A DNA stretch of 64,000 nucleotides from Leucoraja ocellata (Eukaryota). Within the stretch, counting starts at the first letter, position 1. Every line of letters starts with the position of its first letter. Location: assembly GCA_036785375.1 (NCBI GenBank), contig JAWMAR010000201.1:1-64000 (forward strand), in the 5' to 3' direction. This document shows positions 15,226 to 53,454 of the stretch, piece by piece. Under the pieces are notes generated by a model. It had not been told where the DNA came from. It did no database searches and saw nothing but the letters and a program-made list of their open reading frames with translations. Made by a program: the position numbers and the translations under genes.

Positions 15226-15280
15226 ATGGATATCAGGTGCCTGCTCAGCTGCTTCTGGCTGTCTCTCCCCGTCTCAATCC
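15226..15280 (+). CDS. SLAM-like gene B exon 1, signal peptide MDIRCLLSCFWLSLPVSI
   Basis: ATG 15226, 55 nt, phase-1 donor C|GTGAGT, in frame with the V exon at 20913. Confidence 0.85.
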
Positions 15281-15974
15281 GTGAGTTTATTCTGAATTAC
15301 TTATTGTGGTTCACTTCCCCCTCTGGGGACTGCTTTTGGTTTTGCAGACTGGAAACTCGAAACTTCTCGGCAAGTCAAGCCCGGTTTATTGTCATAGGTA
15401 TGGGCAGGTATGGTACGTGGTGCGAAAGATTGGGGTGGGAGAATTGGGTTTCACTGGCATCAGTATTGGGGAAGGAGGGAGCTGTTCCCATGGGACGGAA
15501 TCCACGTGAACTATGATGAGACCAGGATCCTGTGGAACTGCTTAAACAGGGCTGTAGAGAGGGCTTTAAACTAAACTGGGGGAGTGGGCTCAACAAATTT
15601 GAAATGTATAAATGAAGTTGCCCAGGAGGGCCCAAGAGAGGCTACTCAGAGGACGTCCAGAACAAGTAACAGGACAGAAAGTTTATAAAGGGATAAGAGT
15701 CCATGTTCAGGTAAAATGAGGACCAATGTGAGAATAGGGGTGGTGACCACAGAACCAAAGGTCTTAAATTTGAATGCATGCAGTAAATATAAGATCGATG
15801 AGCAGGCAGCATAATTAGAAATTGGTATTTATGACATTGTGGGCATCACAGACATGTGGTTGAAAGAGGGTCAGAGCTGGGAGCTAAACATCCAAGGATC
15901 CACACCCTATTGAAAAGACAGGCAGGTGGGCAGAATTGGTAGCTCACTATGTTGTCTTCGAAAGCTGGCATCAG

Positions 15975-16231
15975 TCTCATTTAGACCCATATATCGCCCG
16001 GCGTGACCTTAAATGGCCGTGGGACTTACCGTCGCCCGCCTGGGGCCTCAACATCGGGAGAAAAATGGTGCACAGGAGAGAAAAGACCTTGATGGATGTT
16101 TGTGTGAATTGAATTGTTTGTGTGTCTTGTAGGAATTGTTTTGTTGGTATGGCTGTAGAAACGCAGTTTCGTTTGAGCCTCACTGAGGTTCAAATGAGAT
16201 GGAATAAATATTGAATTGAATTGAATTGAAA
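15975..16231 (+). mobile_element. Short retroposon 3' end with (ATTGA)n tail
   Basis: aataaatattgaattgaattgaattgaa tail. Confidence 0.5.
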
Positions 16232-18034
16232 TGGATGCTTACAGTTTCTGAACCCTTCCATAAGCTAGGGAACTCTCTTTTCACCTCTACCACATGGCCG
16301 TGATTGGACTTTGTATATGGAACTGGTGTGCTACAATGCTGAGAAATATATTCTGCACTTTGTTTCTGTCGCTTTGTTCGACCTATTGTACTTGTGTTTG
16401 GCTTTGTTGTATTTCTGTATAGTTTGTATATCAAACAAAGCTTTTCATTGTACTAGGTACACATGACAATAATAAACCTAAACCGAAACCAAAAGTCTGC
16501 CCATTACCTTTCCATCCCTCTACTAGGAGAAGGTGTTTGACAGAATAGATCACAGCTAACTTCTTGGAACCCTGCACGCCATTGGGCTTAGGCGACATTG
16601 TGTGGCCAGACTCCTCGGTCTTTAGTACATAGCCACAGGATGCCTGGTGAAGGTATACGTATTTGTCCTTGACGGTGTACCTTCACTTTGGAGTGAAGTA
16701 CATTGAGGATGCTCCAGTAATTACAACCCTAACATCAGAGGTAGGGGAGTTATTGGAAGAAAATAAGACATGATTAATCACTTTGAAAGGCAAAGATTAG
16801 CCAAAGATTGTCAGCTTGGTTTTATTCCACTGTGACCTATTAGGAAGTGGTGACAATATGTATTAATTAGGGCATATAATCCACCTGCATACCTATAAGA
16901 TCTTTGACATTGGAGACTAGACAAAAGGTAAAGATCCACAGGACCCAGAGCAAGTTGACATTGGCTCGATAATAGGAAGCAGAATGATGGTGGAAGGTTG
17001 CTTCAGTGATCGACAGATTACAACCAACGATGTCCCATAGAGATCTGTGCTGTGACCCATAAAGTTTATTGACACAGATAACACAAACATTGGCTATTTT
17101 GTTGACATAAAGGACAACAGTTATAGACTACAGGATGATATTGATGAGCTATTAAAATGGACAGAACAATGACAGATGGAATGTATACGGATAAAGATGA
17201 CCCGAAACATCATCCATTCCTTCTAACCAGAGATGCTGCCTGTCCCGCTGTTACTCCAGCATTTTGTGTCTATCTTATAGGGAAACACAACTCTGGGTTC
17301 ACACCTTCCATCCTCCCCCCTCTAAACCTTCCCAGTGCCAGTAAATGTCTGGCCTTGTTCTCCGCTTCTGATATGCGAAATGCACCATCCCATTTACTCT
17401 GTTCAGGTCCCTCATCACTTCATACCCCCTCGATCGTCCCCCTCAGCAACCTCTGTTCCACGGCAAACAACCTCAGTCTCTAGTTTTTCCTCACAGCGAC
17501 AGTTCCAGTCCCAGCAACGTCCTGGTAAATCTCCCTGCAGTTTCTCTAGTGTGACCTGTCTCTCCTGGGTGGTGGTGCCCAGAACTGTCTGCAGGGTCAG
17601 GCTGGGTCTAACTACTGTTGGGCACAGTTACACCATCTCCAGTTCTTACATGGTCTCTGAGCCTCGACTAAAGGAAAGCAGCCCGTCTGCCTATTGGCCT
17701 GTACCTCGATCTTCATGGATCTTTACACACCAAGTGCCCGCTCCCAGTTCCTTCTGCTCCCCACACCGCCCACCCCCTTTCTTTTACTCTGTATTCACCA
17801 CGTGCACCCTTCTCCGGACTGGGTCCCATTTGCCGTGTCTGTGTCTCGTTACCCATGCATCGAAATCGGGCTGCAGGCTGTAACTTCCTTCCTCAGCCCT
17901 GGGTGCAGAGTCTTCACTCTGTTTTCATCGTGGGCTCACTGTCTCAATTTATCACATTTGAGCATTGAAGAATACATGGAGCAGAATTCCTGCTGGCGAG
18001 CACATATTTCACAGGGCAACAGGAGGAACGCACC

Positions 18035-19181
18035 CAGGGCCGGATTTAGATGAAGAGAGGCCCTAAGCTATTTCACTTGTGAGTCCCCTCCCAATCCCCC
18101 ACCCCCATGACTAGAGGACCATGACTACCCGACAGTGACAGTGACACTTTTAGATCCTACTGTATGCTGTCATTAAACAGTTGGTTTTAAAATACATATT
18201 GGATTCACCACAGAGCGAGCGATGCGTTACCTGGATCGCCGTTTGAAGCTCTGGAGTGTTGGGCCTGCTGCTTCAACATCATGGAGCTGTGGTTTGCAGA
18301 GCTCCCAGCCTCGGGCTGCACTGATTTTAATATCACGGAGCCCTGGGAACCCTTTGCCGAGGGCCACCAGCGTAAATCTCCACCCAGCTCAGCCTGTAGA
18401 CTTCGGTCTCTAGTAGGAAGTGGCCCATTCCGAAATCCAAGCCACTGTGAATGGTCTCCCGTTCCGACGTCGGATGTTGACCCCCAAATTTCATTTTAGC
18501 AATCGCGATGAGGAGGGTCCAAGAGGAGGAGATCCGTTGGAGACGGGAAAAGGGATCGTCAATGGGGGGGCTCCAATGCTACAAATCGCGGTGGGCGCGG
18601 AACTCATTGAGGTGGGGATGGAGGGGTACAAAGGTGAGACCTCTGCTGAGGACAGACCGTTCAGTATCAGAGAGGGGGAGGTCAGGGGGATGGTGAACAC
18701 ACGGCAGGGATGGGGGTTGGGGCCGGAAGGCAGGTGAGTGGACTGAGGCCGAGGCGATGTCTGGTGGGGGGGTGGTCAGGGGCTAGGGGGGAACGAGGAA
18801 TGCAGTGTGGGTGGGGAAGAGCTGGGATCACATGGTTTGAGGGGAATGGGGAAGACCCAGTGGAACAGCCACTGAGGTTACCAGGGTTGGGGGGACTAGC
18901 ACTAGGATCCAGCGCAGTCAAACCCAGGGTAGTGGGAGTCTGCAGCGTGGTACCTCAGGCCTGGCACTGAGTCCAGGCTGCAGGTAAGGCGACGGCTGCG
19001 GGCTGCTGGAGGGCGGTGGAGTGGCCAGGGTCAGCGGGCAAAGAGTACGAGGTTCCGGGGGGCGGATGGTCAGTGAGGCGGCGAGGTTCGACTGGTCCGG
19101 TGAGGCAGTGAGGTGAATAGGCCCCCTAGTTCTCGAGGCCCTAAGTTTAAGCTTGTCTAGCTTATACGTAATCAGGCCCTG
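18035..19181. mobile_element. Non-autonomous hAT-like DNA transposon, 1147 bp
   Basis: TIRs CAGGGCCGGATT / AATCAGGCCCTG; 8-bp TSD AACGCACC/AACGCATC; empty site visible in paralogous copies at ~20346 and ~50305. Confidence 0.85.
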
Positions 19182-19397
19182 AACGCATCAATAGCATTAC
19201 ATGGCAGAATGACACCTATGCCCAGCCCATGCAGAAGTAAATATGACAACCTTTCCCTCTGCTGATACAAGAATGGCTCCAGGCAAAGGGAATGCAGCTG
19301 GTAGGACGTAGGCATCCTTGATGTATTCCTGTCTGAAAGTGAAGCGCGCTGTCCATCCACATCCTGAAGGTGTGCAGATTTGTACGTTCATTGGCCT

Positions 19398-21343
19398 CGG
19401 TCGATGATGGCACCGACTGACCTATGAGGACAGACACGTGGAAGTGTGGACGTCACTGCCGAGGGAATTAACAAAGAACGACCTGGCATGAGGGGACCTC
19501 CATGAGGGAGGGGGAAGAACAATGGGACCCGGCGTTGGGGGAAAGGGCTTGGCATGAGGGACAGGGCAGAACGATGGATATTGCAGAACCTGCCGTGAGG
19601 GGGGAGAAAAACGGGAACCTGGTGAGGGAGAACTTTGTAACTTTGTAAGCACCTTTTAGTGGCGACTATTTGCATACCTTGGTTGGGCAAGCAAACAATT
19701 TCACTGTGACTCGTCACGTCTGACAATAAAGTGTTCAATTCAATTCAATTCACAATATTCCAAATGTGGCCGGACCAACGCCTTGTAGAGCCTCAGCAGT
19801 CCATCCCTGTTTATGTGTACGACCCCTCATGAAATAAATACTAGCATTGCATTTGAATTCTTTACTGCCGATTCAACTTGCAGATTAACTTTTTGGGAAT
19901 ATTTCACCAGCACTCCAAAGTCCCTTTGCACCTCCGATTTCTGGATTCTCTCCACATTTAGAAAATAGTCTACACCTTAATTACACTATATTCCATCTTC
20001 CACTTCTCTGCCCACTCTCCCTACCTTTCCTAATCCTTCTGCAGAGTCCCAGCTTTCTCTACATTACCGGCCCCTCCACCTATTTTTCACATCCACAAAC
20101 TTGGCCACAAAGCCTTCAATCCCTACATCCAAATCATAGCTGAATGGTAACTGTCACCTCCAGTTGCTGCCAATTTGTTGGCAGCCTTCCAATTACTAGA
20201 GGAGGTGGGTGTTGCTTTATGTTTTCTCTGCCAGATACTTGACCACTCACTGACTTGCTTGGATCCCATAACATTTCTCACATTTGCGCATTGAGTAATA
20301 CATGGAGCAGAATACCTGCTGGCAAGCACATAGGTCAACAGGAGGAACGCATCAATAGCATTACATGGTAGAATGACACCTATGCCTGGCCCATACAGAA
20401 CCAAATATGACAACCTTTCCCTCTGATGACACACGAATGGCTGCGGGCAAAGGGAATGCAACGGGCTGACATGGGGCATCCATGATGCATTCCTGTTTCA
20501 AAGTGAAGCACGCTGTCCATCCACATCCTGAAGGTGTGCAGATTTGTACGTTCATTGGCCTCCGTAAAATTGCTCCTAATGTTCAGGCAGTGGATGGGCA
20601 AGTGAGATTGTATAGAACTCGTGTGAATGACTGATCGATGGACGGCATTAACTCGATGGGCCAAAGGGTCTGTTTCCATGGTGTAAAAAAGTAAAGGGTG
20701 CTTTCAGGAGCCCGTTTACAATCACCAACAGAATATGCACCCTGTTCCCTCCGTGGGCTCACTGATGCAGGGACTGTGGGCTGGGTATCTCACGGAGCCG
20801 GGAGCCAGACGATGGGCCGCATGGCCTGCTCATGTGCTCTGTGATTCTCCCAGCTCCGTTTCCTCCTCCAGTCACTGAGCTCTCCTACTGACTGCCTCTC
20901 TTGTCTCCACAGCTGGGACTGGGGCCGCCGCTGGCACCGTGACCGGAGCTCGGGGACACTCCGTCTCCTTACCTGCTGGGATCACAGTCGCACCGGACAT
21001 TACGGATGTGGTGTGGAAGCGGAAATCGCCCAGATTCAGGATAGCGGTATACGCGAATGAGAAGATGAATTACTTTAACACTAATTACACGGGACGGGTA
21101 ACTCTTCACCGCAGGAACTTCAGTTTGGAAATCCGTGATCTACGGGGAGAGGACGCGGGTGAATATGAGGTGACTTTTGTAATGAGTTCAGGAGATGAAA
21201 CTCACGCAAGAGTCCGACTGGAGGTGTACGGTGAGTGAGACTGCCACAAAGGTCCCGGGTTTCACCAGCTCCTGAACCCATCTAATTAACAGGCGGGGCA
21301 GATCCTGTGCATTCCCCAATTTACTGAACCCCACTGACTGCCA
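19398..21343. repeat. Inverted segmental duplication copy 1 (intron + V exon), partner ~49311-51260
   Basis: ~2 kb colinear reverse-complement match, including shared TE insertions. Confidence 0.92.
20913..21230 (+). CDS. Gene B exon 2, Cys-less IgV domain (GTGAAAGTVTGARGHSVSL...VVWKRK...SLEIRDLRGEDAGEYEV...RLEVY)
   Basis: Acceptor tcttgtctccacag, 318 nt phase 1-1, donor G|GTGAGT. Confidence 0.92.
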
Positions 21344-22039: not shown

Positions 22040-23980
22040 AGGGGTGTACGTCCTATCGGAAAGACAGAAAGGTGGGCAGAGGGGGTGGGGTAGCTCTGTT
22101 AGTTAGTTATTTACAGGACCCCAAACATTAGCCAGGATATAGGGTACAAGTTACATCAAGAGATAAAATTGGCATGCAAAAATAGACAATGCAACGGTGG
22201 TCATGGGAGATTTCAATATGCAGATAGACTGTAAAAATCAGGTTGGTACTGGACCCAAGAAAGGGAATTTGTAGAGTTCCTCCGAGATGGATTCTTGGAG
22301 CAGCTTGTACTGGAGCCTAATAGGGAAAAGGCAATTCTGGATTTAGTGTTATGTAATGAACCGGATTTGATAAGGGAACGCAAGGTATAGGAATCATTAG
22401 GAGGTAACAATCACATCATGATAAGTTTCAATTTGCAATTTGAGAGGGAGAATCGTATGTGTCAGTATTGCAGCTGAGTAACGGGGACTACAGAGGCATG
22501 AGGAAGGAGCTGGCCAAAGTTCACTGGAAAGAAACCCCAGCAGGGGTGACAGTGGAACACCAATGGCAGGAATTTCTGGGCATAATCCGGAAGATGTGGG
22601 ATCTTTTCATTCCAAAGAGGAAGAAAGGTTCTTGGGGGAGAAAGAGGTGACTGTGGCTGACAAGGGAAATCAAGGACAGTATAAAACTAAGAGAGAAGGG
22701 ATATAACATAGCAAATATTAGTGGGGGGATTGGGAAGCTTTTAAAGAACAACAGAAGAACTAAAGAGGCAATATGGGGAGAAACGATGAAATACAAAGAT
22801 AAGCTAGCCAATAATATAAAAGAGGAGAGCAAACGTTTCTTCAGTTATATAAAGAGTAAGAAATAGGCAAGAGTGGAAGTTGGGCCACTGGAGAATGATG
22901 CAGGAGTGATAATGGGGAATAAAGAAATGGCAGGGGAGTTGAATAACTTTTTTGTGTCAGTCTACACAGTGGAAGACACCAGCAACGTGCCTGAAATCAA
23001 GAGAGTCAAGGGGTAGAAGTTAGTGGAGTGGTTATTACTAGGGAGAAGGTGCTTGGGAAGCTGAAAGGGCTGAAGGTGGTTAAATCATCTGGACCAGATG
23101 GACTGTATCCTAGGCTTCTGAAAGAGGTGGCTTTAGAGATTGTGGAGGCAATGACAGTGATATTTCAAGAATCACTCGAGACAGGAGATGATTGGAAAAA
23201 TGCTCCACTGCACAAGAAGGGAGCAAATATGGAATAATAGGATCTGTAGGCTGGTTAGTCTGACCGGTGGTTGGTAAGATTTTAGTGTCTATTATAAATG
23301 ATGAGGTTCGGAGTACTTAGTTCACGATAAAATAAGCCGAAGTCAGCATGGCTTTGTAAAGGGGAGGTCTTGCTTGACAAATTTGCTGGAATTCTTTGAA
23401 GAAATAAATAGCAGGACAGACAAAGGAGAGTCAGTAGATGTTGTGTACCTAGATGTTCAGAAAGCCTTTAATAAGGTGCCACACGTGAGGCCGATAAGAA
23501 AGATGAGAGCCCATTGTATCAAAGTCCAGATACTAGCATGGATAGCAGGCTGGATGGATGGCAGAAGACAAAGAGCGGCAATAAAGGGGGCTTTTTCTAG
23601 TTGCCTGCCAGTGACTGGTGGAGTTCCACAGGGGTTGGTGCTGGGGCTGCTACTCTTCTAGTTGTATATATATAAATGATTTGGATGAGAGGATTGAAGG
23701 GTTTGTGGCCAAGTTTGCGGATGGTACGAAAATAGGTGGAAGGGCAGGTAGTGCAGAGAAAACAAGCAGACTGCAGAAGGACTTAGGATTGTGGGCAGAC
23801 AAGTGGCAGATGGAATATAGTGTCGCAAAGTGTGGAATCAAGTATTTTGGTAGTAGGAATAAAGGTGCAGACTATTTTCTAAATAGGGAGAGAATTGAGA
23901 AATCGGAGGTGCATGATGGTCGGTGTGGACTCGGTGGGCTGAAGGGCCTGTTTCTACACTGTATCTCTAAACTAAACTTC
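22040..23980 (+). mobile_element. CR1 LINE ORF2 fragment (endonuclease to RT), frameshifted
   Basis: MGDFN, LDLVL, KSSGPDGLYPRLLKE, DVVYLDVQKAF, GVPQG, AKFADGTK motifs. Confidence 0.9.
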
Positions 23981-24671
23981 TATAAGATGTATATTATACA
24001 GATCATATTCCTGCTCCAATTAATAAAGTCTTGCCTGCCCAAACTCTCCCTATAGCGTTGGCCCTCACGTCCTGGCCACATTCTTGTAAATCTTCCCTGT
24101 ACTCTTTCCAGCCGAACAGCATCCTTCCTGTAGCAGGGTGACCAAACCTGAACTCCATTAACCATTCGTCAGCTCACCTGCCCAACTAATCAAGATCCTA
24201 CTACAATAGGTGACCCAGGATCTGCACGTGCTGGATTCACTCTGGAACACAGCACGCTACCCAGTCTGGGTCTGTGTCCGTCACAGTCCCAGGGCTGCCA
24301 CTGTTGGCCAGGTTCTGGGCCGGTCTGAGTTGGGTCACACTCGAGTTTTTAAGGAACACTGGGACCACTCACAAATGACAAAAGATATGGAACTGGAGAG
24401 ATTCCCAGGGAACAGAGCCATAAACAGGACACAGTGGAGAGTTTGTGGATGAGTGCGGGTAGTGTTCGGGAAGGGGGCACATCACACGTGTGGATTTCCT
24501 CCAGCAACAACTGGCTGAACTGAATGGGGAGGGAAGAGTTAAACTGGTGGGTGGAAATGAGCTGGAATCGGCTCATTCGTGGGTCGTGGCTGTTGGAGAC
24601 GGGTTATGGGGTATCGAGGGGTTTACAAGTATCTCCTTTACTCATCTTTCTTCTCTCTGCCCCAACCTCAG

Positions 24672-24953
24672 AGCCCGTGGCAGGAACACAGATCAAGGCT
24701 AAGAACATCACTGAGATCTGCAACTTCACCCTGACCTGCTTCGTGACCTCTGGTGGCCCCATCAACTTCACGTGGTGGAGGGAAGCTGTGGGAAACGACA
24801 ACACCCATCACCTCGTGGGACATGAAAAGACAATACAGGTTCATCACACAGCAGAGGTCGGGGACGTTGTGTACAGGTGTGAGGCCACGAACCCGGTCAG
24901 TGAAGGCACGGCACAAATCCGGCTGAAGAACATCTGCAAACAGACCACATCTG
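24672..24953 (+). CDS. Gene B exon 3, SLAM-type IgC2 domain with four Cys (EPV...ICNFTLTC...W...YRCEATNPVS...IC)
   Basis: Acceptor ccaacctcag, 282 nt phase 1-1, donor G|GTGAGT; CxxxLxC...YxCxxxNPVS...C pattern of CD2/SLAM second domains. Confidence 0.92.
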
Positions 24954-25032
24954 GTGAGTGTCAGAGGGCGAATCAGGTTTGAAGAATGTGGTGGTTTAAT
25001 TGTTCATTGAGACAGTGCAGAGGGAGCTTCAC

Positions 25033-28000
25033 GTTTTTTTTTCCCTTCCAAATACTTTATTCAATAATTGCATATTACAGTGTACCAGAAAGTACAAAAA
25101 CGTTCAATAGTCACATTGCATCAGGCAATCATCATAAAACACTAATGGCATCTTTACAATGCATTCATTGTAAAGATGCGGAAGGTCATTGTTCATGGAA
25201 GGCCACCAGAGTCCCCGTGGACACCACATGTTCCCTCTCCTGGGACATGCGAGCACAGACATAGGCCTGGAAAAGGGGCAGGCAGCCGACTTTAGTGTGG
25301 CCATTGACTGGACCTGGAGCAAACCGACAGAGAGATCCTACCCTCCTGATCGACAATCCCCACTCCCTGCCTTGTGCCCAAATACCAGAATCATGGGACT
25401 AAAATGCAACCAGAACCAGAGGAACAGCCCCTTCAGATACTCATACAGGGGCTGCAACCTCTCAAGCTCCATATACACGTGGTACACGGTCTCGTTCTTG
25501 CCACAGAAGTTACAGACAGTTGCCTAGTCTGTGAATCGAATTAAACATTTGTTACACACCACGTCTCTGTGCAACACTCTGCACCCCAGGTCTCCGATGT
25601 AAAGGAGGAGACCTCCACTGGGGACCTCTCCCGCCGTCAGGTGATAACTCAGACCGCCAGGGCGTGTCCGGATGGAAGACGAGGGTGAGGAAATGGTGAG
25701 TGTGCAGGAGCAATCTGCACGGAATGGCACGCTGGGCATCTTGGAAAGGCGGCTCGTGTTGTGTAGGGCCGGCTCCCAGGAAAGATTCCGGGACCTGGTC
25801 TCAATGGGCAATTCTGACAAGTGTGACAAAAGATATGGAACTGGAGAGATTCCCAGGATACAGAGCCATAAACAGGACACAGTGGAGAGTTTGTGGAATA
25901 GTGCGGGCAGTGTTCGGGAAGGGGGCACATGACACGTGTGAACTTCCTCCAGCAACTACTGGCTGAACTGAATGAGGAGGGAAGAGTTAAACTGGTGGGT
26001 GGAAATGAGCTGGGATCGGCTCATTCGTGGGTCGTGGCTGTTGAAGACGAGTTATGGGGTATCGCGGTGGTCAGCTCGGTCGGAATCATTCCGAGCACTC
26101 GCCTCTTCTCAACGCCCACCATGACAGGGTGAGGACTGGCCACCCTCGCAGTTACAACACCCTCCTCCCCCTGAGGAGCAGCACACTGGCTGAAGGTGAC
26201 CAGATTCATAATTCTCAAGGCATCACGGTAGAAACTGTGCAGATTCCATGTGGTGGGTCGACTGATGCCCGCCACCGGGATCTGCAAACCCCCCTCTAGG
26301 CAACGGCCTTGGCGGAAAATATACGTGGTCAGAGTGTGCCATCTTGGAGGATGTTCTGCATACACGTACCTCCGCAGGGTCCTGAGACGGAGGGCCCCCA
26401 CCTGAGTACGCACGCATAGCAAGGATTGGCCACCCTCCTCTAACGGGAGACTCAGGCCCGCTACGGAAACCCAGTGCTTCTTGTCCCCCCAGAGGAAACT
26501 CACTAACCTCTTCTGTATCAAAGGCAGATGGCGGGAGAAGAGTGGCCAGCTGGTACCATAACATGCAGGCCACCAGCACTCTACCTTCAAAGGTCAAGCC
26601 CTCTGAGCAAGACTGACCAGCGTCCCAGCCAGGCGACGACTTTCGTCTCCAACTTCTGCCAGTTTGTTGGCCAAGCATCCTCAGTGGGATTTGGGTAGAT
26701 GCCCAGGTAGAGGAGGTGTGTAGTGCTCAACGCATAAGATGTCATCTCCTCCGGTAGAGAGTCCACCTGCCACTGACTCACCAAAAGTCTGGAACACTTA
26801 CTCCAGTCGATCCTGGTGGAGGATGCGGCCGAGAAAACATGCTGGCACTCGCGTCTCCTCCGCAGGGCAACAGGGTCAGTGAACATAAGGAGCACATCGT
26901 CGGCGTGGGCCGAGAGAACAACCCCCAACTCCCGGTCCTGGCAAAGTCAGGCCTGTCAACCGCATCCGAAGAAGACACATGAACGGCTCCACACACACTG
27001 AGTACAACTGACCAGACATGGGACACCCCTGGCGTACCCCCCTCCCAAAGTGAATGGGTGCCAACAACGAACCATTTAACTTTACGTGGCACTCCGCTGG
27101 GGCGTACAAAAGCCGGACCCGGGCCACAATATGCGGTCCAAATCCAAACGCCTGCAATGTCCCAAAAAGGTAGTGATGATCTACCCTGTCAAATGCCTTC
27201 TCCTGATCAAGGGATAGAGAAGCAACTGACTGACCAGCCCCCTGGGACAATTGGATCAGGTCCCTAACCAGGTAGATGTTTTCTTGAATGGACGAGCCAG
27301 GGACTGTGTAGGACTGGTCCAGGTGGATCAGTCAGGACAGCATGAAACCCAGGCGATTTGCCATTGATGGGGCAAAAACATTATACTCTGTACTGAGGAG
27401 AGAGACCGGGCACCAGTTCTTCAACAGGTGAAGATTACCCTTCTTGGTTAGCAGGACAACGACTGCCTGCACCACAATAGGGGCATCTCCCCGGTCACCA
27501 GGCTCTCCCCTAGGACCTTTGTGTAATCCCCCTTGGACATCCCAGAAGGCTCTAACAAACTCTATGGTCAGCCCATCTAGCCCTGGTGCCTTACCCCTCC
27601 TGTGCAAGGCACCAGTCAACTCCTCCAATGATATTAGGTCATCAAAGAGTTCAACCTCCTCTATAACTTCCGGAGCCGGGCCGCCCTCACGGGAGTGCCT
27701 TCCAGTTTGTACCTGGGGTACAAACCAGAACCGGAAACAACAGCAGTTTGAGCTTAAAAGCGGTCTCGGAGTCTTTTAGACTGACTCTGAGACCGCTTTT
27801 AAGCTCAAACTGCTGTTGTTACTGGTTCTTTTAGAGCAGCAGAAGCAGTTCTCTCCAGCCAAGCAAGGAAAACGCCCACGCTTATCTTCTCTGCTGGGGG
27901 CAGCTTTAGGAGGCTTTTACCAGGTCTTCCGAGCCTCCAGAAACTGCCGGATTCAAAAAGTACCTTCTCTTTGTTTATGCCCAGGCAACCTGGTCTGGGC

Positions 28001-28303
28001 AAAATGGTATGGGAGCAGAGTTATGATGCTCGAAACCACAAACACCGCTTTTGTCCGACTCCCAGTCTCCAGGTACAGTTGGTAATTCACCAGCCACTGC
28101 CGCTCCTACGGAACTCCAGAAAAGCGCTGGAATTCCTCACTAAATGGAGAAATCCTTTGAAAAGAGAAGTCCCTGCAGTCCGACGTTATGTCTAACCTTG
28201 AAATCTCACTATTTCTGTCCCTCTTCCTTCAACGAAAACCTTTCAAGGGTTACTTATAAACTTATCAGCTGTCGGAGCAGTGCCACTCTGTATCCGACCT
28301 TGA
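25033..28303 (-). mobile_element. Tx1-clade (L1 group) LINE insertion, degenerate, with rearranged 5' part
   Basis: Minus-strand AATAAA plus poly-A at 25034-25062; RT motifs GKAPGLDG, SLDQEKAFDRV, GVRQGCP, ADDV; flanked by direct repeat GAGCTTCAC (25024-25032, 28304-28312). Confidence 0.8.
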
Positions 28304-28466
28304 GAGCTTCACTCTGTGTCTATCCATGTTCTGGGAGTGTGTGAATGGACAGCGCTGTCGCAGTTATTTGAAGTCAGTCTACGATGTGGGCCCCAAGTTC
28401 TTGCTGAGTTTGTGAACAAGGCCCAATGCAGTCTCTCTGATGAGTGATCCCCTCTTCTTTCACCAG

Positions 28467-28565
28467 GGTTGAGTAGCTGTCTCCGTGGATGTTGGTTGAG
28501 GGCCACGGTCGCAGCCGTCCTGCTTCTGATTCTCATCTCAGTCACTGTCGCCACCCACATCATCA
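28467..28565 (+). CDS. Gene B exon 4, stalk plus Arg-containing transmembrane helix (GLSSCLRGCWLRATVAAVLLLILISVTVATHII)
   Basis: Acceptor cctcttctttcaccag, 99 nt phase 1-1, donor A|GTGAGT, in frame with exon 3; not listed in the ORF track. Confidence 0.85.
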
Positions 28566-28689
28566 GTGAGTGCTGTTTTTAAGTGTTTGCAGCTAAAATG
28601 TAGAAACAATGAACTGCAGCCATTGTTTAATTCAGAAAAGGTCACAAAGTGCTGGAGTAGCTGCAGCAAGGAACCAGGTTCGCTTGGAC

Positions 28690-29820
28690 CTTCTCCGAAC
28701 TCTCCCTACCGTTTCTGAATATCACCGTCTCCATCACAGGAGACAGACTATTGACCGACATCTACTACTAACCTACTGACTCCCATAGATATCTAGACTA
28801 CACTTCTTCCCACCCTGCTTCCTGTAAAGACTGTCATCAACTCCCAATTCCTTCATCTATGCTGTATCTGCACCCAGGACGAGGCTTTCCATGATCATCG
28901 GAGATGTCCTCATTCTTTAGGAAATGGAATTTCGACTCTTCCATTATAGATGATGCTCCCACTAGGGTCTCCTCGATATCCCGCAGCTCTGCTCTTGCTC
29001 CCCATTCGCAACAAGGAAAGAGTCCCACTTGGCCTCACCTTCCACCCCACCAGCCGTTGCATACAACATATAATCCTTTCACCACCTCCAACGGGATCCC
29101 ACTACTGGCAACATCTTCCCATCTCCACCCCTTTCTGCTTTCTGCAGACACCCTTTCCTCCGTAACTCCCTAGTCAACTCGGCCCTTCCCACTCAAACCA
29201 CCTTCTCCCCAGGTACTTTGACCTGAAACTGCAGGAGATGCAACACCTGTCCCTATACCTCCCCCTTCGACTCCATCCAAGGACCCCAACAGTCTTTTCA
29301 GGTGAGGCAGAGGTTCACTTGCACCTCCTCCAACCTCATCTATGGTATCCGCTGTTCCAGGTATCAACTTCTGTACATCGGTGAGACCAAGCGCAGGCTC
29401 AGCGATCGTTTCGCTGAACACCTCCGTTCAGTTGCCTTAACCTACCTGATCTCCCGGTTGCTCAGCAGTTTAACTCACCCTCCCATTCCTAATCTGACCT
29501 TTCGGTCCTGGGCCTCCTCCATTCTTAGGGTGAGTCCAAGCGCAAATTGGAGGAACAGCACCTCATATTTTGCTTGGGTAGCTTACACCCCAGCGGTATG
29601 AATATTGACATCAAATAGCACTTGCTTTCCCGATCTTTTTATCCCCGCTCCCTTCCCAGTTCTCCCATCTCTTACTGTCTCCGACTACATTCTATCCCTG
29701 TCCCGCCCACTGCCCTGCCAGCAATCTGAAGAAGAGTCTCGACCGGAAACATCACCCATTCCTTCTCTCCAGAGATGCTGCCTGTCCCGCTGAGTTACTC
29801 CAGCATTTTGTGTCTACCTT
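28690..29820 (+). mobile_element. Penelope-like element: RT C-terminus, GIY-YIG endonuclease and 3' pLTR
   Basis: FTCTSSNLIYGIRCSR..LYIGETKRRLSDRFAEH; 3' end ctgaagaagagtctcgaccggaaac...gagttactccagcattttgtgtc. Confidence 0.88.
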
Positions 29821-31460: not shown

Positions 31461-31510
31461 GCGCCCGCCCTGTCAGTGGAACTGCAGACAGGCCTCACAA
31501 GACTGAATGA
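31461..31510 (+). CDS. Gene B exon 5, short tyrosine-free cytoplasmic tail SARPVSGTADRPHKTE*
   Basis: Strong acceptor tcctatctctctccccacag, phase-1 continuation, TGA at 31508-31510; total CDS 804 nt = 267 aa. Confidence 0.7.
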
Positions 31511-41127: not shown

Positions 41128-41214
41128 CTGTAGAGAAAGCAGAGAGTGTTCACAGCAAAGGGACATTGTGCTCTGGATGCACTCAACTGTGTAAAGAGAA
41201 GGAGGCATAGCACA

Positions 41215-41410
41215 GTGACTAGGTGTGTGGGGACAGGGTACCCTCGTAACTGGTGTGTGGGGACAGTGAACCCCAGTAACTGGGTAGATGGAGGAGAGTG
41301 TACTCCAGTAACTGGCGGTGTGGGGACAGTGTACTCCAGTAACTGGGTAGATGGAGGAGAATGTACTCCAGTAACTGGCGGTGTGGGGACAGTGTACTCC
41401 AGTAACTGGG
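41215..41410. repeat. Minisatellite in the last intron of gene C (gtgtggggacagtgtactccagtaactgg, ~63 bp higher-order unit)
   Basis: Direct observation of tandem units. Confidence 0.85.
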
Positions 41411-41521
41411 TGTATGCCCATTTTTAACCCTGGCCTGGCTGGGGATAGTGAGCGTGGTCTCTAGGATGAGGGTTCAGTCCCACTGACCCCCTCTCCCATG
41501 GGTCAGAACATGTCCCGTTAC

Positions 41522-44839: not shown

Positions 44840-45974
44840 CTGAAGTTGGGGCAGAGGGAAGAAAGATGAGTAAAGGAGATCCTTGTAAACCCCTCGATAC
44901 CCAACAACCCGTCTCCAACAGCGATGAGTGAATGTTAGGCTGATCCCAGCTCATTTCCACCCACCAGTTTATCTATTCCCTCCCCCTTCAGTTCAGACAG
45001 TTGTTGTTGGAGGAAGTCCACACATGCTGCGCCCCCTTCCCGACCACTGCCCGCACTCATCCACAAACTCTCCACTGTGTCCTGTTTACAGCCAAGAGTC
45101 AAAAGTGTGATATTATCATATGCCCCATATAGAACAATGAAATTCTTACATTCAGGAGCACAACAGAATATGTAAACATAGTAATCTGTAAATAATATAA
45201 TAAACATGAAAAATTTGCAGTTCGCATATTGTAATGGGTTGAGGTTCTTGTTGAGGTAGGAGTTGATATGCACCGTAACCAATCTCTCAAAGCACTTCAT
45301 CACCACGGATGTTAGTGCCACAGATCGATAGTCATTGAGGCATATTGCCTTACTCTTTTGGAAGAGTATGTCGCCTTACTAGAATTTTTATTATTGATGC
45401 CCTCTTAAAGCAGGTGGGAACTTCAGACTTCAGTAATGAGAGGTTGAAGATGTCTATAAAATCTCCAGTCTGCACAGGTTTCATGGCTCTGTATGTTGGG
45501 AATTCTCCTCAGTTCCATGTATTTTGTCACTCCTGTGAGTGAGTGGTCCCCATGTCTCTTTCACACCTGATGGACATTTTTAACGTATTGATCGGTATGG
45601 GCAGAGGGGACTGAGAGAAACGACCCCCAGTGGGGGGAAGACAAGAAACAGAGACAGGAGGAGTGGGATCGTGGATTAGAGATTCAGGATAAGGGGCTGT
45701 CCTTGTCAGATGGAGAAATTGAGAAATTCCTTCTCTCTGAGGGTTGGAAATCAGTGGAATTCTCCCTTGGAGAGCTGTGGAGGCCAAGTCGGTAAAAGTA
45801 TTTAAGGCCAAGACAGATAGAACTTTGTTCTGGAGGGAAGGCGGGAATGTGTACAATGGATTCAGATTCCGAATCTGATTCCGAACAAAGAGGGATCCGG
45901 CATGGGGGGGTGGGTGAGTGTGGGGGCCCCAAGAGCAACGAGGGACCATCAGGACTATATTGATAACGTATAAC

Positions 45975-47230
45975 ATCCTCCATGCTGCACTGTCTCACCT
46001 GGAGCAGCGGGGGAGCTACGTGCGGATGCTCTTTGTGGACTACAGCTCTGCTTTTAATACCATCCTTCCCCACAAACTGGTGGACAAACTGGGGGACTTG
46101 GGACTTCCACACTCCACCTGTACGTGGATAAATAGCTTCCTGTCGGGTCGCAGCCAGAGAGTCAGAGTGGGCCATCACACATCCACGGCCCTCAGCCTCA
46201 GTACCGGCTCTCCACAGGGCTGCGTACTGAGCCCCCTGCTCTACACCATCTACACACATGACTGCGCCCCCGCCCACCACAGCAACACCATTGTCAAATT
46301 TGCGGATGACACTACAGTGGTGGGACTCATCTCCGGGGGGGACGAGTATGCCTACCGGGATGAGGTGGAGCAGCTGACAGTGTGGTGCGAAGAAAATAAC
46401 CTGCTCCTCAACACCTCAAAGACAAAGGAAGTAATAATAGACTTCAGGAAGAACAAAACGGACATGGTACCACTGACTATCAGAGGGGACTGTGTAGAGA
46501 GGGTGGCGGATTTCCGCTTCCTGGGAATCCATATTGAGGAGGACCTGACGTGGAGCGTGAACACCACTGCGCTGCTGAAAAAGGTCCAGCAGAGACTGCA
46601 CTTCCTGAGGGTGCTCAGGAAGAACAACATCACTCAGAGACTGCTGCTGTCCTTTTATCGGTGCTCCATTGAGAGCATACTAACATACTGTGTATGCGTG
46701 TGGTACACCAGCTGCACAGCGGCTCAGAGGAAAGCGCTCCAGAGGGCCATTGACAATGCCCAGAGGATTGTCGGCTGCCCTCTCCTTACCTTGGAGGACT
46801 TACACAGTTCCCGCTGCACCAAAAAAACCCAGAATATAATAAAGGACATTTCCCACCCCGGACACTCCCTGTTTGAACTGTTGCCGTCAGGCAGACGGTA
46901 CAGATCCACAAGGACAAGGACAAATAGACTAAAAAACTGTTTTTACCCCACTGCTATAAAAGCACTAAATGTAGCCACCAAGGAACGGAGGGGCGACACA
47001 GACTAAGGGACTGTGGTAACTGTGAAATCGACAGAAGGATGGAGGGTTGGGTGTGTATGCTTGCTTTGTCCGTGATATTTATTTATTTGTTTATCTTTAT
47101 TATTTTACCGTGGATGTAGCGTTAGCTTTAGAAATGTTTGAATGCTGCACTGACTGGCTGACATTTTAAATTTCGTTGTACATGGCCCATGTTACAATGA
47201 CAATAAATAAACTATTCTATTCTATTCTAT
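45975..47230 (+). mobile_element. Rex1/Babar-type LINE, 5'-truncated, with uninterrupted RT C-terminal ORF (to 47006)
   Basis: MLFVDYSSAFNTI, GSPQGCVLSPLLY, KFADDTT, SGRRYRS..TRTNRLKN; AATAAA plus (CTATT)n tail; lies in gene C intron 2. Confidence 0.9.
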
Positions 47231-47744
47231 GTAACCTTGTCGGCACCCTATATGTGGAGACTCTTTGCGTATGTGTGTATTATATGCAAAACAAAGAATT
47301 TCTCTGTACCAAGTGTATGTAACAAGAAATCATCAACCAATCAATCAATCGCCAGATTCAGATTAATATATTATCATCTGGTCAAGATGCAATGAAATTC
47401 CTTGCTTACATGACATGGAGTAAGCAGTGTGTTTAGTAACAATAAGAGAATAATAAATACGACTGGCACAATACAGTGGAATGGTGCAAGAGAAAGTCCC
47501 CAATAATACTGGAATAGCGCAGAAATATTGAGGTGCAATAATAAGCAGGAAAGTTGAGCTGAGGCCAAGGTCAGACCAGTGCTGATCTCAATGAGGTTTG
47601 AAGGGCCAAATAGCCTCTTCCTGCTCATGTTCCATGCTCTGATGTTCTCCTCCCAACCATGGGAACTGGTTAACCCTGGGATGAAGGAGGGAAGATTTCC
47701 CAGCCAGACGCTACTGGGTGAGATTATTGTGAACGTTATACAGA

Positions 47745-49310: not shown

Positions 49311-51260
49311 CTGGCAGTCAGTGGGGTTCAGTAAACTGGGGAATGCACAGAGTCTGTCCTCACCCATTAATTAGACGGGTTGAGCAGCCAGTGAAACACG
49401 GGACCTCTGTGGCAGTCTCACTCACCGTACACCTCCAGTCGGACTCTTGCTAGAGTTTCATCTCCTGAACTCATTACAAAAGTCACCTCATATTCACCCG
49501 CGTCCTCTCCCCGTAGATCACGGATTTCCAAACTGAAGTTCCTGCGGTGAAGAGTTACCCGTGCCGTGTAACTGGTGTTAAAGTAATTCATCTTCTCATT
49601 CGAGTATACCGCTATCCTGAATCTGGGCGATTTCCGCTTCCACGCCACTTCCGTAATGTCCGGTGTGACTGTGATCCCAGCAGGTAAGGAGACCGAGTGT
49701 CCCCGAGCTCCGGTCATGGTGTCAGCGGCGGCCCAAGTCCCAGCTGTGGAGGCAAGAGAGGCAGTCAGTAGGACAGCTCAGTGACTGGAGGAGGAATCGG
49801 AACTGGGAGAATCACAGAGCACAGGAGCAGGCCATGCGGCCCATCGTCTGGCTCCCGGCTCCGTGAGATACCCAGCCCACAGTCCCTGCATCAGTGAGCC
49901 CACGGAGGGAACAGGGTGCAGATTCTGTTGGTGATTGTAAACGGGCTCCTGAAAGCACCCTTCACTTTTTTACAGCAAGGAAACAGACCCTTTGGCCCAA
50001 CGAGTTCATGCCGTCCATCGATCAGTCATTCACACGAGTTCTATAAAATCTCACTTGCTCATCCACTCCCCGAACATTAGGAGCAATTTTACAGAGGCCA
50101 ATGAACGTACAAATCTGCACACCTTCAGGATGTGGAAGGACAATGCGCTTCACTTTGAAACATGAATGCATCATGGATGCCCCATGTCAGCCCGTTGCAT
50201 TCCCTTTGCCCGCAGCCATTCTTGTGTCATCAGAGGGAAAGGTTGTCATATTTGGTTCTGTATGGGCCAGGCATAGGTGTCATTCTGCCATGTAATGTTA
50301 TTGATGCGTTCCTCCTGTTGACCTATGAAAGATGTGCTTGGCAGCAGGTATTCTGCTCCATGTATTCCTCAATGCGTAAATGTGAGAAATGTTATGGGAT
50401 CCAAGCAAGTCAGTGAGTGGTCAAGTATCTGGCAGAGAAAACATAAAGCAACACCCACCTCCTCTAGTAATTGGAAGGCTGCCAACAAACTGGCAGCAAC
50501 TGGGGGTGACAGTTACCATTCAGCTATGATTTGGATGTAGGGATTGAAGGCTTTGTGGCCAAGTTTGTGGATGTGAAAAATAGGTGGAGGGGCCGGTAAT
50601 GTAGAGAAAGCTGGGATTCTGCAGAAGGATTAGGAAAGGTAGGGAGAGCGGGCAGAGAAGTGGAAGATGGAATATAGTGTAATTAAGGTGTAGACTATTT
50701 TCTAAATGTGGAGAGAATCCAAAAATCGGAGGTGCAAAGGGACTTTGGAGTGCTGGTGCAATATTCCCAAAAAGTTAATCTGCAAGTTGAATCGGCAGTA
50801 AAGAATTCGAATGCAATGCTGGTATTTATTTCATGAGGGGTCGTACACATAAACAGGGATGGACTGCTGAGGCTCAACAAGGCGTTGGTCCGGTCACATT
50901 TGGAATATTGTGAATTGAATTGAACACTTTATTGTCAGACGTGACGAGTCACAGTGAAATTGTTTGCTTGCCCATCCAAGGTATGCAAATAGTTGCCACT
51001 AAAAGGTGCTTACAAAGTTACAAAGTACTCCCTCACCAGGTCCCCGTTTTTCTCCCCCCTCACGGCAGGTTCTGCAATATCCATTGTTCTGCCCTGTCCC
51101 TCATGCCAAGCCCTTTCCCCCCACGCCGGGTCCCATTGTTCTTCCCCCTCCCTCATGGAGGTCCCCTCATGCCAGGTCATTCTTTGTTAATTCCCTCGGC
51201 AGTGGCGTCCACACTTCCGCGTGTCTGTCCTCATAGGTCAGTCGGTGCCATCATCGACCG
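49311..51260. repeat. Inverted segmental duplication copy 2 (partner 19398-21343)
   Basis: Reverse-complement match. Confidence 0.92.
49426..49743 (-). CDS. Gene C exon 2, Cys-less IgV domain
   Basis: 318 nt phase 1-1 exon, acceptor cctccacag, donor G|GTGAGT; 10 aa differences from the gene B V exon. Confidence 0.92.
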
Positions 51261-51970
51261 CCGCTCCGACCTGTCCATTATCACCACCGGGTCCTCTCTT
51301 GAGGCCTCCGTGGCACCGACCCAGGTCCCAACCGCGGGCTCCTCTGACCCAGGTCCCAACCGCGGGCTCCTCTGACCCAGGTACCATTGTCCGCGTGGCT
51401 TCATCGACACGCGAGGCTCCACCTCTGACCCGCGAGACTCCGCCCCGTGAGATTCTGACCTGCGAGGCTCAGACTCCAACCCTTGAGACTCTACCTCCGA
51501 CCCGCGAGGCTCCAACTTTGACCCGCAAGGTTCCGGTTCGCGCTCCAGCCGGCGAGACACCGGCCCACGAGGCCCAGCCCATGAGGGTCCGGCCTCGGCT
51601 TCTCATGGGCACCTCTGGAAGGCGTCAGCTGCAGCAGCACCTCTGGAGCTATATCTGAGGAAGGATGTTCTGGCTCTGGAGAGGGTCGAGAGGAGGTTTA
51701 CAAGATTGATCCCAGGAATTAATAGGTTAACATATAATGATCGTTTGACGGCACTGGGCCTATACTCACTGGACTTTAGAAGAATGAGGGGGGACTTCAT
51801 TGAGGGAAAGTCAGTGGATATATTTAAGGCAGAGATAGATAGAATCTTGATTAGTACGGGTGTCAGAGGTTATGGGGAAAATGGGGTTATGAGGTAGAGA
51901 TGGATCAGCCATGATCGAATGGCAGAGTAGACTTGATGGGCCAAATGGCCTAATTCTGCTCTTATCACTT
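50540..51970 (+). mobile_element. CR1 fragment split by a minus-strand retroposon (~50912-51640) with 21-bp internal repeats
   Basis: CR1 coding resumes at ~51645 (YLRKDVLALERV); inserted element has tandem-repeat tail aattgaattgaa. Confidence 0.75.
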
Positions 51971-52068
51971 GTCATTATTGTCAGGATTCCTCTGTGTGCT
52001 GGTCATAAATCACTGGTGACCTCCATGTCTGGTATCATTGGTCACTATAGGAAGTGACCCCTTGTTCT

Positions 52069-52384
52069 GGAAGTCCAGAAGAAGGGGTCACATTTTAAGG
52101 ATAAGGGGGAAATCTTTTAGGACTGAGATGAGGAAAACATTTTTCACACAGGGAGTGGTGAATCTCTTGAATTCTCTGCCACAGAAGGTAGTTGAGGCCA
52201 GTTCATTGGCTATATTTAAGAGGGAGTTAGATGTGGCCCTTGTGGCTAAAGGGATCAGGGGGTATGGAGAGAAGTCAGGTACAGGATACCGAGTTGGATG
52301 ATCAGCCATGATCATATTGAATGGCGGTGCAGGCTCGAAGGGCCGAATGGCCTACACCTGCACCTATTTTCTATGTTTCTATGT
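52069..52384 (+). mobile_element. Young CR1 3' end
   Basis: FFTQGVVNLLNSLPQKVVEASSLAIFKRELD; near-identical to the other young copies. Confidence 0.88.
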
Positions 52385-53387
52385 GTAGTGCAACTCCCAC
52401 CTTGCAGCTGACAACCAGAAGTGATGGATTTTTCTGAGGCAAGAGAAATGCGGTCAACTGTGACCCTGAACCCAGGCAGTAACTCACTGCCTTTGAAACC
52501 TCAGATTCAGATTAGTTTATGCCATATACACCAGGGGCAATGAAGTTTCAAGTTCGCATGAAGCTCACAGAGTAAACGATAAAGAGAATAACCACAAACC
52601 AAATACAATAATGTATGCAAATCCGCACATTTGTGCAAAGATTTTTGTGTAAACTGAAGACGTACGAAAAATACTAAAATGCAATAACAAAATAACCAAT
52701 TGAGGTAGAATTACGTACAAGAGTACATGACAGCAGCTCAGGGAAGGGCATGTGAAAGACATTAAAGGTTCAGGAAATTGAGAGCCATGGGGAAGAAGTC
52801 GTACTTAAGTCTGTAAAGATACCTCCATGTAGACGCCACATTAAAGGTCTGTCAGGATATGATAAGCAAACTCGAGTCATGCACTCTATCAAATGGTGGC
52901 AGGAAGTGGTAAGGTGATCAGAACTAATGAACAGAATTATGTGAAGCATAAAATGGTGCTGAACTTCCGATACGTATACAGAGGGAGACCATGAGGGAGA
53001 GAGAGGAATAAAAGGAGGGAGAGAGAATGAGAGAGAGGGGGCAACAAAGGGAAAGACAGTCTGTCCTACAGAGATGATTGAGGTGTTGAGGAACCAACAA
53101 ACATGGTCAAAGTGGCGAACAAAGATATAGAACGTCTGTGGATTAAGTGAGATATAGAGAGACTAAGTGAGATGGAATGAGATCAAGACCTAGAGAGGGA
53201 CAGAGGAAAAAGTGTGAAAGAATGGGAGAGACAAAGAGCAAGTAAGCAATTTACATGCAAAGGTGTGAACAAGCAAAGGGAGGATGTCACCATGATGAAT
53301 GGCCCCTGCAAGCACTATAAACCTCACATCGCTCACACATATTTCACCGCTCTATAATCAGAATCAAACTCTAAAACTTGACATTAC

Positions 53388-53454
53388 CCAAACATCTGGC
53401 AAAAAGGTAGGCACAGAACAGGCAGACAACACTTCTTGAGGAGAGCCCCCACAT
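53388..53454 (-). CDS. Gene C exon 1, putative signal peptide MWGLSSRSVVCLFCAYLFARCL
   Basis: ATG in aagATGt context, 67 nt, phase-1 donor G|GTAATG in frame with the V exon; ETS/PU.1 motifs immediately upstream; total CDS 1002 nt = 333 aa. Confidence 0.7.

Follow-up and report, generated by a model that had tools for sequence, protein, structure and literature searches.

Two linked CD2/SLAM-family genes, both intact and here called B and C, lie convergently in a 38-kb part of the window, the 64,000-nucleotide stretch of skate DNA that was analysed (zero N). We give a probability of about 60% to the reading that they form a paired receptor in this skate. Gene B is on the + strand and has five coding exons, whose lengths total 804 nt, or 267 codons and a stop; gene C is on the - strand and has six, totalling 1002 nt, or 333 codons and a stop. 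All five exons of gene B are open with consensus splice sites, and every intron of the two genes is GT-AG except for a GC-AG intron after the TM exon of gene C. The leader exon of gene B supplies 18 codons and 1 nt (phase 1). The exons are as follows.

15226 to 15280, + strand: gene B leader exon, coding part, starting with ATG and ending in C before the donor GTGAGT
20913 to 21230, + strand: gene B IgV exon, 318 nt, no Cys, Pfam V-set 6e-11
24672 to 24953, + strand: gene B IgC2 exon, 282 nt, four Cys
28467 to 28565, + strand: gene B stalk/TM exon, 99 nt
31461 to 31510, + strand: gene B tail exon, coding part with stop, a split-codon Ser and 15 residues
53454 to 53388, - strand: gene C leader exon, coding part, 21/22 identical to P0168
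49743 to 49426, - strand: gene C IgV exon, no Cys, Pfam V-set 1.5e-11
44839 to 44558, - strand: gene C IgC2 exon, four Cys, 91/94 identical to P0168
42279 to 42157, - strand: gene C TM exon, uncharged helix, GC donor
41610 to 41522, - strand: gene C cyt1 exon, ITSM TVYAQV, 97% identical to P0168
41127 to 41005, - strand: gene C cyt2 exon, SVYDTI and stop, 97.5% identical to P0168

The gene models, coordinates and difference counts of the initial annotation all held, with every feature found where it had been placed, and the cartilaginous-fish setting it proposed agrees with the nearest proteins, which come from Amblyraja radiata and Rhinoraja longicauda. A spliced transcript of the C type is known: P0168, a public protein of 333 residues, derives from a 1361-nt spliced Logan contig and is near-identical to gene C outside the IgV domain, where identity is 80%. 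P0168 and R. longicauda XP_078276543 reproduce the splice structure of gene C, including the GC donor. The junctions of gene B are all reproduced in Gnomon models, that from leader to V in P0175 and those from C2 to TM and from TM to tail in A. radiata XP_032898070. The leader of gene B is identical to that of R. longicauda P0175 at 15/18 residues, its stalk/TM exon to A. radiata P0167 and P0176 at 31/32 and 30/32, and its tail to that of A. radiata P0176 at 15/15 (14-15/15 across A. radiata proteins).

Two remnants lie on the 5′ side of gene B.

2755 to 7306, + strand: gene A remnant, with a B-type leader at 2755-2809 and an IgV at ~6980-7306
10410 to 10705, - strand: inverted IgC2-like pseudo-exon, in two matching pieces with an 11-nt gap between them

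The leader regions of genes A and B are ~70% identical in DNA, and neither a + strand IgC2 exon nor a TM exon belonging to gene A was found within the window. The inverted IgC2 remnant near gene A is frameshifted.

The ectodomain of both genes is of the CD2/SLAM type, and this earlier assignment of the domains is borne out by the Cys pattern and the Foldseek ranks. The V domains contain no Cys in their 105-residue in-frame translation and thus no canonical disulfide. The C2 domains have four Cys each; across an alignment of 48 proteins C151 never varies, and conservation reaches 90% or more at C145, C198 and C217. The same order of a disulfide-less V and then a C2 with two disulfides is found in mammalian SLAMF1, SLAMF5/CD84, SLAMF6/NTB-A, 2B4 and CD2/CD48/CD58, and mammalian SLAM/CD2 receptors likewise give each domain an exon of its own, in phase 1. 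The Pfam model Receptor_2B4 scores 21.6 bits on the IgV of gene C (cut-off 21) and 18.5 bits on that of gene B, below the cut-off, and the Pfam SLAM model reaches 18 bits on the V domain of gene A against a cut-off of 25. With phmmer against the PDB, the best single-domain matches are SLAMF5 (2.5e-5), CD2 (1.6e-4) and CD48 (2e-3), and multi-domain pIgR scores above these overall. For the fold comparison, the AlphaFold model of P0168 (pLDDT 76) was used as a stand-in for gene C, the IgV domains being 80% alike. With this model Foldseek placed CD2, CD48, NTB-A and CD58 at ranks 1-7 and 9 (TM-score to target 0.77-0.83) and CEACAM1 only at rank 13; sequence identity to the matched solved structures is just 20-24%.

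Genes B and C combine similar ectodomains with unrelated ends, so the paired-receptor sequence anatomy first described for them stands. The IgV exons differ at 13/318 nt (10 of 105 in-frame codons non-synonymously and 2 synonymously, with 95/105 residues identical), and the IgC2 exons at 18/282 nt (10 of 93 codons non-synonymously and 6 synonymously, with 83/93 residues identical). Leaders, TM exons and tails show no relationship, and outside two homology blocks the loci have only transposon pieces in common. Near-identical ectodomain exons in inverted orientation could also arise if B and C were mis-assembled haplotypes or another assembly artefact of a single gene. However, such an artefact would not be expected to leave nearly all intron sequence unrelated along with the leaders, TM exons and tails, to yield two types that each have orthologues in other species, or to produce sharp block edges with an old duplicate at one joint. 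Short contigs from two DNA samples also carry the TM exon of gene B with its flanks (contigs of runs X1 and X3 span 28467-28565 with both flanks, and one of run X1 covers 24817-25083 in the IgC2 region), and B-type and C-type IgC2 letters occur separately in short contigs. We consider an artefact of this kind scarcely credible.

The stalk/TM exon of gene B encodes two stalk Cys, an Arg near the outer end of the TM helix and a His near its inner end, and a Cys three places before the Arg gives C-x-x-R. The 16-residue tail is Tyr-free and free of known motifs. Gene C encodes a neutral TM and, in its tail, two Tyr motifs: the ITSM TVYAQV, and SVYDTI, which is the S variant of the ITSM form T-x-Y-x-x-V/I of mammalian SLAM receptors. 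Exon reading thus agrees with the earlier description of both TMs and both tails, but the label 'inhibitory' for C is too simple, as TVYAQV is the classical SLAM switch motif. C is a canonical SLAM-type receptor, and its tail may recruit SAP/EAT-2-type or SHP/SHIP-type SH2 proteins.

In the trees, the IgV domains group by lineage and not by TM type, which indicates repeated homogenisation of the ectodomain exons across the two gene types. The 13 activating-type rows need 12 state changes in the IgV tree of 50 typed rows and 10 in the IgC2 tree. Type labels in both trees carry some error, as Gnomon models may be chimeras: in P0167 and P0171, exons of adjacent genes are joined. Forcing the activating-type rows into one clade of the IgV tree, a test run after a quick tree had been inspected, costs 571.7 lnL (AU p 6e-13). 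The two types stand as sisters within Pristis (100), Hemitrygon (97) and Cetorhinus (99), all three starred, and in the window (94). Between B and C there are two homology blocks, and B also holds an older footprint.

B 19398 to 21343, C partner 51260 to 49312: young homology block, 95.6% over 1954 columns
B 24421 to 25026, C partner 45088 to 44482: older homology block round IgC2, 88.4% over 612 columns
19181 to 19401, + strand: old footprint in B, an older copy of a segment inside the young block

The young block has sharp edges in B and contains 1.5 kb of intron and the V exon. The old footprint adjoins its 5′ joint, and exactly there the sequence switches to the start of C's block; it matches the young-block segments 20345-20565 and 50311-50091 at 194/221 and 192/221 positions, and these two match each other at 212/221. 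Non-coding divergence is 60/1623 in the young block and 29/249 and 22/73 in the IgC2 flanks. Copying from C to B probably took place long after the two genes separated, given ~3.7% divergence in the block versus ~11-12% elsewhere. What B received was a 1.95-kb piece of C made up of the V exon and 1.5 kb of intron 1. Repeated non-reciprocal transfer between the gene types, mostly of the V exon, keeps the ectodomains alike and would hold B in tune with C or the ligand of C.

Since the transfer, the V exon has a pN/pS of 1.37 (from 10.5 and 2.5 changes) and a divergence no different from that of the non-coding part of the block (4.1% vs 3.7%, Fisher p 0.75); by neither measure is purifying selection on the exon seen. 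This neutral rate, the clearly broken state of the neighbouring gene A and the absence of RNA support would suit a gene B that is a recent mosaic, a non-functional or unexpressed by-product of exon transfer, with the pair merely apparent. In two possible RNA runs the depth is zero on the IgC2 exon of B and close to zero on the TM exon, but these runs (18 and 14 million letters) are too small for zero depth to mean absence. The five open exons with their consensus splice sites, the near-identity of TM and tail to A. radiata proteins and the same architecture modelled in seven other species all argue against decay, and we find it quite improbable.

Gene B instead belongs to an elasmobranch-wide class in which leader, stalk/TM exon and 16-residue tail are conserved; for all three parts there are orthologues in batoids and in sharks. 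A basic TM residue is present at the same column in 13/13 aligned public elasmobranch proteins of the B type (Arg in 8 batoid and Lys in 5 shark proteins), and a Cys stands three places before it in all 13 and in gene B of the window. The module thus comprises a stalk Cys, C-x-x-[R/K] and an inner His, and its conservation with the tail across elasmobranchs is new here, as are the grouping of the IgV domains by lineage and the copying of the young block from C into B. The novelty that the initial annotation suspected in the chondrichthyan occurrence is reduced on two counts: the orthologues are already annotated, under automatic NCBI names of the SLAM, CD48 and Ly-9-like kind, and Xenopus has CD2/SLAM members with an NxxR TM, as described in PMC4536121 and PMC6557307, which cite Guselnikov et al. 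2011, Immunogenetics 63:679.

The basic residue of B, in the outer third of the helix, would couple the protein to an acidic-TM signalling adaptor, and B might then deliver an activating signal upon seeing what C sees. The initial annotation's idea of B as a counter-receptor for pathogen ligands that exploit C stays conjectural. Alternatively, B may be a short-tailed non-signalling, decoy or soluble member similar to CD48, SLAMF8 or SLAMF9, in which the TM Arg serves dimerisation, retention or shedding. Its tail has no known motif, automatic orthologue names include 'SLAM family member 8-like/9-like' and 'CD48 antigen-like', and secreted forms would result from the TM-skipped models P0158 and P0159 and from the read-through models P0171, P0175 and P0028. 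In the same direction, FcR-gamma is described as absent from the cartilaginous fish genomes available to a 2014 survey (PMC4016189). However, a passive anchor would hardly account for a basic residue kept at one TM column from sharks to skates, or for the conserved flanking Cys and His, and the design of B matches that of the adaptor-coupled partners of paired receptors. A passive role for B therefore seems unlikely to us.

The reading of B and C as a paired receptor resembles the KIR, LILR/PIR, Ly49, SIRP, PILR and Siglec pairs, in which linked genes have near-identical ectodomains, one with a Tyr-motif tail and the other with a basic TM and a short tail, and in which gene conversion or exon exchange homogenises the ectodomains. 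It differs from them in its CD2/SLAM scaffold, in the ITSM switch motif of the 'inhibitory' partner C, and in a ligand logic that is likely homophilic. Mammalian SLAM receptors are typically homophilic, and we know of no charged-TM, adaptor-type partner in the mammalian SLAM family. As presented in the sources above, Xenopus CD2F is similar in being an expanded multigene family that joins a SLAM/CD2 ectodomain either to ITSM tails or to an Arg TM implying an ITAM adaptor, and is dissimilar in having NxxR where skate B has C-x-x-[R/K] and a conserved inner His. Also unlike Xenopus CD2F, the B module is elasmobranch and kept from sharks to skates, and the skate pair is linked, its ectodomains being 90% identical and its exon-transfer joint visible. 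The FcR-gamma-coupled class with an NxxR TM (LRC, Xenopus FCRL/CD2F) was rejected as an assignment for B, which has Cys and not Asn three places before the basic residue. Tentatively, adaptor-coupled SLAM receptors could be an ancient branch, of at least crown-elasmobranch age, with a TM module of its own and a putative acidic-TM partner.

Pathogen pressure has been answered again and again by paired receptors, yet little is known of their deep history, and the SLAM family is usually presented as relying on ITSMs alone for its signalling. Elasmobranchs keep a charged-TM SLAM-like class alongside classical ITSM members, with V exons exchanged repeatedly between them, and automatic names such as 'SLAMF5-like' and 'CD48-like' mask two functionally different gene types. 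The B/C system lets one ask which adaptors early jawed vertebrates had, and offers a route to studying how a homophilic receptor gains an activating counterpart and a view of exon-level gene conversion holding pairs in register. If the ancient-branch reading is true, the ancestor of jawed vertebrates would already have had paired SLAM signalling, mammals would have lost it, and the B/C locus would display the transfer joint itself.

The two gene models were picked out from a six-frame ORF list and repeat scans of the window, which contains 0 N, and their sequence was then read exon by exon. B is an activating-type gene, with an Arg in its transmembrane (TM) segment and a Tyr-free tail of 16 residues, and C is an ITSM-type gene, with an uncharged TM and two Tyr motifs in its tail.

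Exons of B and C, each read in the sequence
15226-15280, + strand, B leader
20913-21230, + strand, B IgV
24672-24953, + strand, B IgC2
28467-28565, + strand, B stalk/TM
31461-31510, + strand, B tail
53454-53388, - strand, C leader
49743-49426, - strand, C IgV
44839-44558, - strand, C IgC2
42279-42157, - strand, C TM
41610-41522, - strand, C first cytoplasmic exon (cyt1)
41127-41005, - strand, C second cytoplasmic exon (cyt2)

Both models are complete, the exons adding up to 804 nt (267 codons and a stop) in B and 1002 nt (333 codons and a stop) in C. The domain exons are in phase 1 throughout, and the introns are GT-AG, with the GC-AG intron 3' of the C TM exon as the sole exception. B and C differ at 13/318 nt in IgV and 18/282 nt in IgC2, with 10 residues differing per domain; the recount reproduced exactly the numbers of the initial annotation. 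A short ORF runs through the B IgC2 donor (24954-24982, +) for 9 codons before a stop, and the ORF through this donor is retained in Gnomon models P0171 (A. radiata), P0175 (R. longicauda), and P0028 (L. erinacea; P-numbers denote public proteins). The TM exon is skipped in the ray models P0158 and P0159. Such read-through or exon skipping would yield secreted forms. The last intron of C contains a minisatellite (41213-41411; TRF period 31 at 41213-41410, and period 63 with 2.7 copies at 41246-41411), which on the C strand reads as repeated S-I-Y-P-V-T-like peptides and lies outside the transcript-supported C model. An Rfam scan of the window gave 0 matches.

The ectodomains had been described as SLAM-like, and this description is borne out by three lines of evidence. 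Searches used single exons, while full-length queries and the fold were taken from public proteins rather than from joined B or C models. First, the V exons of B and C encode 0 Cys and the C2 exons 4; a Cys-free V domain followed by a four-Cys C2 domain is a hallmark of the CD2/SLAM family. Second, the V exon has SLAMF5, CD2, and CD48 as its top single-domain matches among PDB sequences; the C2 exon matches generic Ig domains only. Third, a fold was modeled from a 48-protein alignment for P0168, a C-type protein of 333 aa that is near-identical to C except in IgV (pLDDT 76, ectodomain mostly >90), and CD2, CD48, NTB-A/SLAMF6, and CD58 take ranks 1-7 and 9 in Foldseek. Pfam gives V-set and Ig matches for the ectodomain exons, and its family-specific models are only marginal (Receptor_2B4: 21.6 bits for C at a cut-off of 21, 18.5 for B). 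Membership among CEACAM proteins was rejected because CEACAM1, at rank 13, falls below all CD2/SLAM structures, and membership of pIgR because its scores are the sum of several weak domains. The C tail carries TVYAQV, which has the classical ITSM form, together with SVYDTI.

A run search returned three runs of uncertain kind, presumably DNA, with 54-58% of words, and two tiny possible RNA runs; runs were compared with window positions 24600-30599. X1 and X3, two samples of one study and presumably genomic though uncertain in kind, cover all bins. They contain the B TM exon with its flanks, and the 3' part of B IgC2 with 2-4 other letters, and a C-type contig also aligns on B IgC2 at 90% likeness. 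Because B-type and C-type IgC2 letters are separate in X1 and X3, which also carry the B TM exon with its flanks, the possibility that B and C are mis-assembled haplotypes of one gene is excluded. The two tiny possible RNA runs cover only the high-copy repeat at 28600-29999 within this region; on the B exons their depth is 0 on IgC2 and 0.06 (X5) on the TM-exon bin, a result that speaks neither for nor against expression of B. The repeat occupies the last intron of B at very high copy number, with a peak at 29600-29799, and a related copy, 76% identical, lies at 53827-54880.

Relatives of both genes are found widely among elasmobranchs. When the B V exon was compared by HMMER with 1.84 billion representatives, 236 proteins were found at E <= 1e-3 (best 72% identical); these are NCBI models of skates, rays, sawfish, and sharks, named SLAMF5/8/9-like, CD48-like, or Ly-9-like. 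Three word-based searches with public proteins passed 14/171, 82/4644, and 67/2717 candidates. For C, R. longicauda XP_078276543 has the C leader type and both Tyr motifs. P0168, which comes from a spliced Logan contig of 1361 nt, recovers all C junctions including the GC donor, and matches C at 21/22 leader residues, 91/94 IgC2 residues, and ~97% of cyt1 and cyt2. Each exon is ~97% identical to C except IgV (80%; window 49426-49743), and P0168 may represent a C allele whose V belongs to a different lineage, the orthologue of a sister species, or a paralogue encoded in a separate cluster of this genome.

For B, the C2-to-TM and TM-to-tail junctions recur in A. radiata XP_032898070 (270 aa), which is identical to B at 30/32 residues of the TM exon and 15/15 of the tail. 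Models of 268-272 aa from Pristis, Hemitrygon, and two Mobula species share with B the type of leader, the Cys of the stalk, the Arg of the TM, and the tail, and shark proteins (Mustelus, Scyliorhinus torazame, Cetorhinus) have Lys at the position of the TM Arg. In the TM alignment, which left out P0246 as lacking the module, a basic residue occupies one column in 13/13 proteins; a Cys precedes it by 3 places, and a His lies close to the inner end of the helix. Coupling of the FcR-gamma type (NxxR) was rejected for B, as the defining motif is absent from this alignment. A protein atlas search with the TM-plus-tail of P0176, an A. radiata B-type protein, gave a single unnamed match at 0.83, which is chance level. 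The sharks also have long isoforms of the Lys-TM proteins (P0066, P0224, P0212) with a conserved C-terminal G-P-(V/A)-Y-E-L-D, a YxxL-type Tyr absent from batoid tails. Near-consecutive NCBI accessions in Pristis (XP_051890853/XP_051890855) and Rhinoraja (XP_078276540 to XP_078276543) do no more than hint at gene adjacency.

Upstream of B lies a gene remnant, A (+, 2755-7306), consisting of a leader of the B type (2755-2809) and an IgV exon (~6980-7306); no IgC2 or TM belonging to it was found on the + strand of the window. Over the V domain, A matches V1 of A. radiata XP_032898071 at 97% identity and R. longicauda XP_078276540 at 87%. The relatives of these genes identify the host as a skate closely related to Amblyraja. 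The XP_032898071 model combines an A-type V with V and C2 exons of the B type; since all exons are in phase 1, the A V exon might likewise be spliced into B. An inverted IgC2-like pseudo-exon is present at 10410-10705 (-), in two matching pieces with an 11-nt gap between them.

The B and C loci have two blocks in common and no more, one around IgC2 and one around IgV.

B 19398-21343, C 51260-49312, V block with sharp edges

Divergence in the V block is 60/1623 (3.7%) in non-coding sequence and 13/318 (4.1%) in the exon (Fisher p 0.75), and the flanks in the IgC2 block differ at 29/249 and 22/73 positions (pS 0.110). Judged by sequence, the IgC2 block is older than the V block. Directly 5' of the V block, B 19181-19401 is an older copy of a segment also found inside the block, matching the two young copies at 194/221 and 192/221 positions, while these match each other at 212/221. 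At the joint, 19398-19401, the end of the old copy meets the start of C's block. Old and new material are thus both in B and C has one copy only, which favors copying from C into B. As the B leader region resembles that of A (~70% alike), B is an activating-type gene with a replaced V exon. Between B and C, pN/pS comes to 1.37 in V and 0.47 in C2, with too few changes for a claim of selection; for the V exon, where exon divergence equals intron divergence, positive selection is unsupported. In B IgC2 (24672-24953), three short motifs match C and P0168 and three others match A. radiata B-type proteins, which suggests a mosaic formed through patchy conversion. Retroelement insertions with reverse-transcriptase-like ORFs (23374-24055, 26021-27628, 45918-47006) fill the V-to-C2 and C2-to-TM introns, so these introns of B and C can no longer be aligned.

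In an IgV tree of 136 domain rows, activating-type and ITSM-type V domains group by lineage, with mixed-type groupings for the window pair (support 94), Pristis XP_051890855 and XP_051890853 (100), Hemitrygon (97), Cetorhinus (99), and S. torazame (91). A more careful tree held 50 rows typed by regular expression, leaving out other or unknown tail types as well as P0167 (chimeric-looking), P0014 (isoform), and P0033 (long branch), and needed 12 state changes for 13 activating-type rows. Forcing these rows into a single clade cost 571.7 log-likelihood units (AU p 6e-13), in a test whose group was set by TM type after the first tree had been seen. The IgC2 tree is roughly the same (10 state changes, 13 activating-type among 45 rows). 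Among myliobatiform rays its grouping follows gene type, which argues that V exons were exchanged more often than C2.

Paired receptors in general are already a known kind, as are charged-TM SLAM members in Xenopus: passages in PMC4536121 and PMC6557307, crediting Guselnikov 2011, place NxxR-type TMs in its expanded CD2/SLAM family. The B TM is also basic but lacks NxxR. Passages in PMC4016189 state that FcR-gamma, FcRL, and LRC genes were not found in 2014 cartilaginous fish data. The literature searched gave no description of elasmobranch SLAM receptors, the sole mention being a figure legend in PMC10751288, which locates slamf within the MHC region of elasmobranchs. The initial annotation had proposed a paired SLAM-like receptor system; its structural features are confirmed, and a paired receptor is the best reading of B and C, though their function is inferred. 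New are the TM module of elasmobranchs, the finding that it is conserved all the way from sharks to skates, and a recurrent exchange of V exons with a joint still visible in the window.
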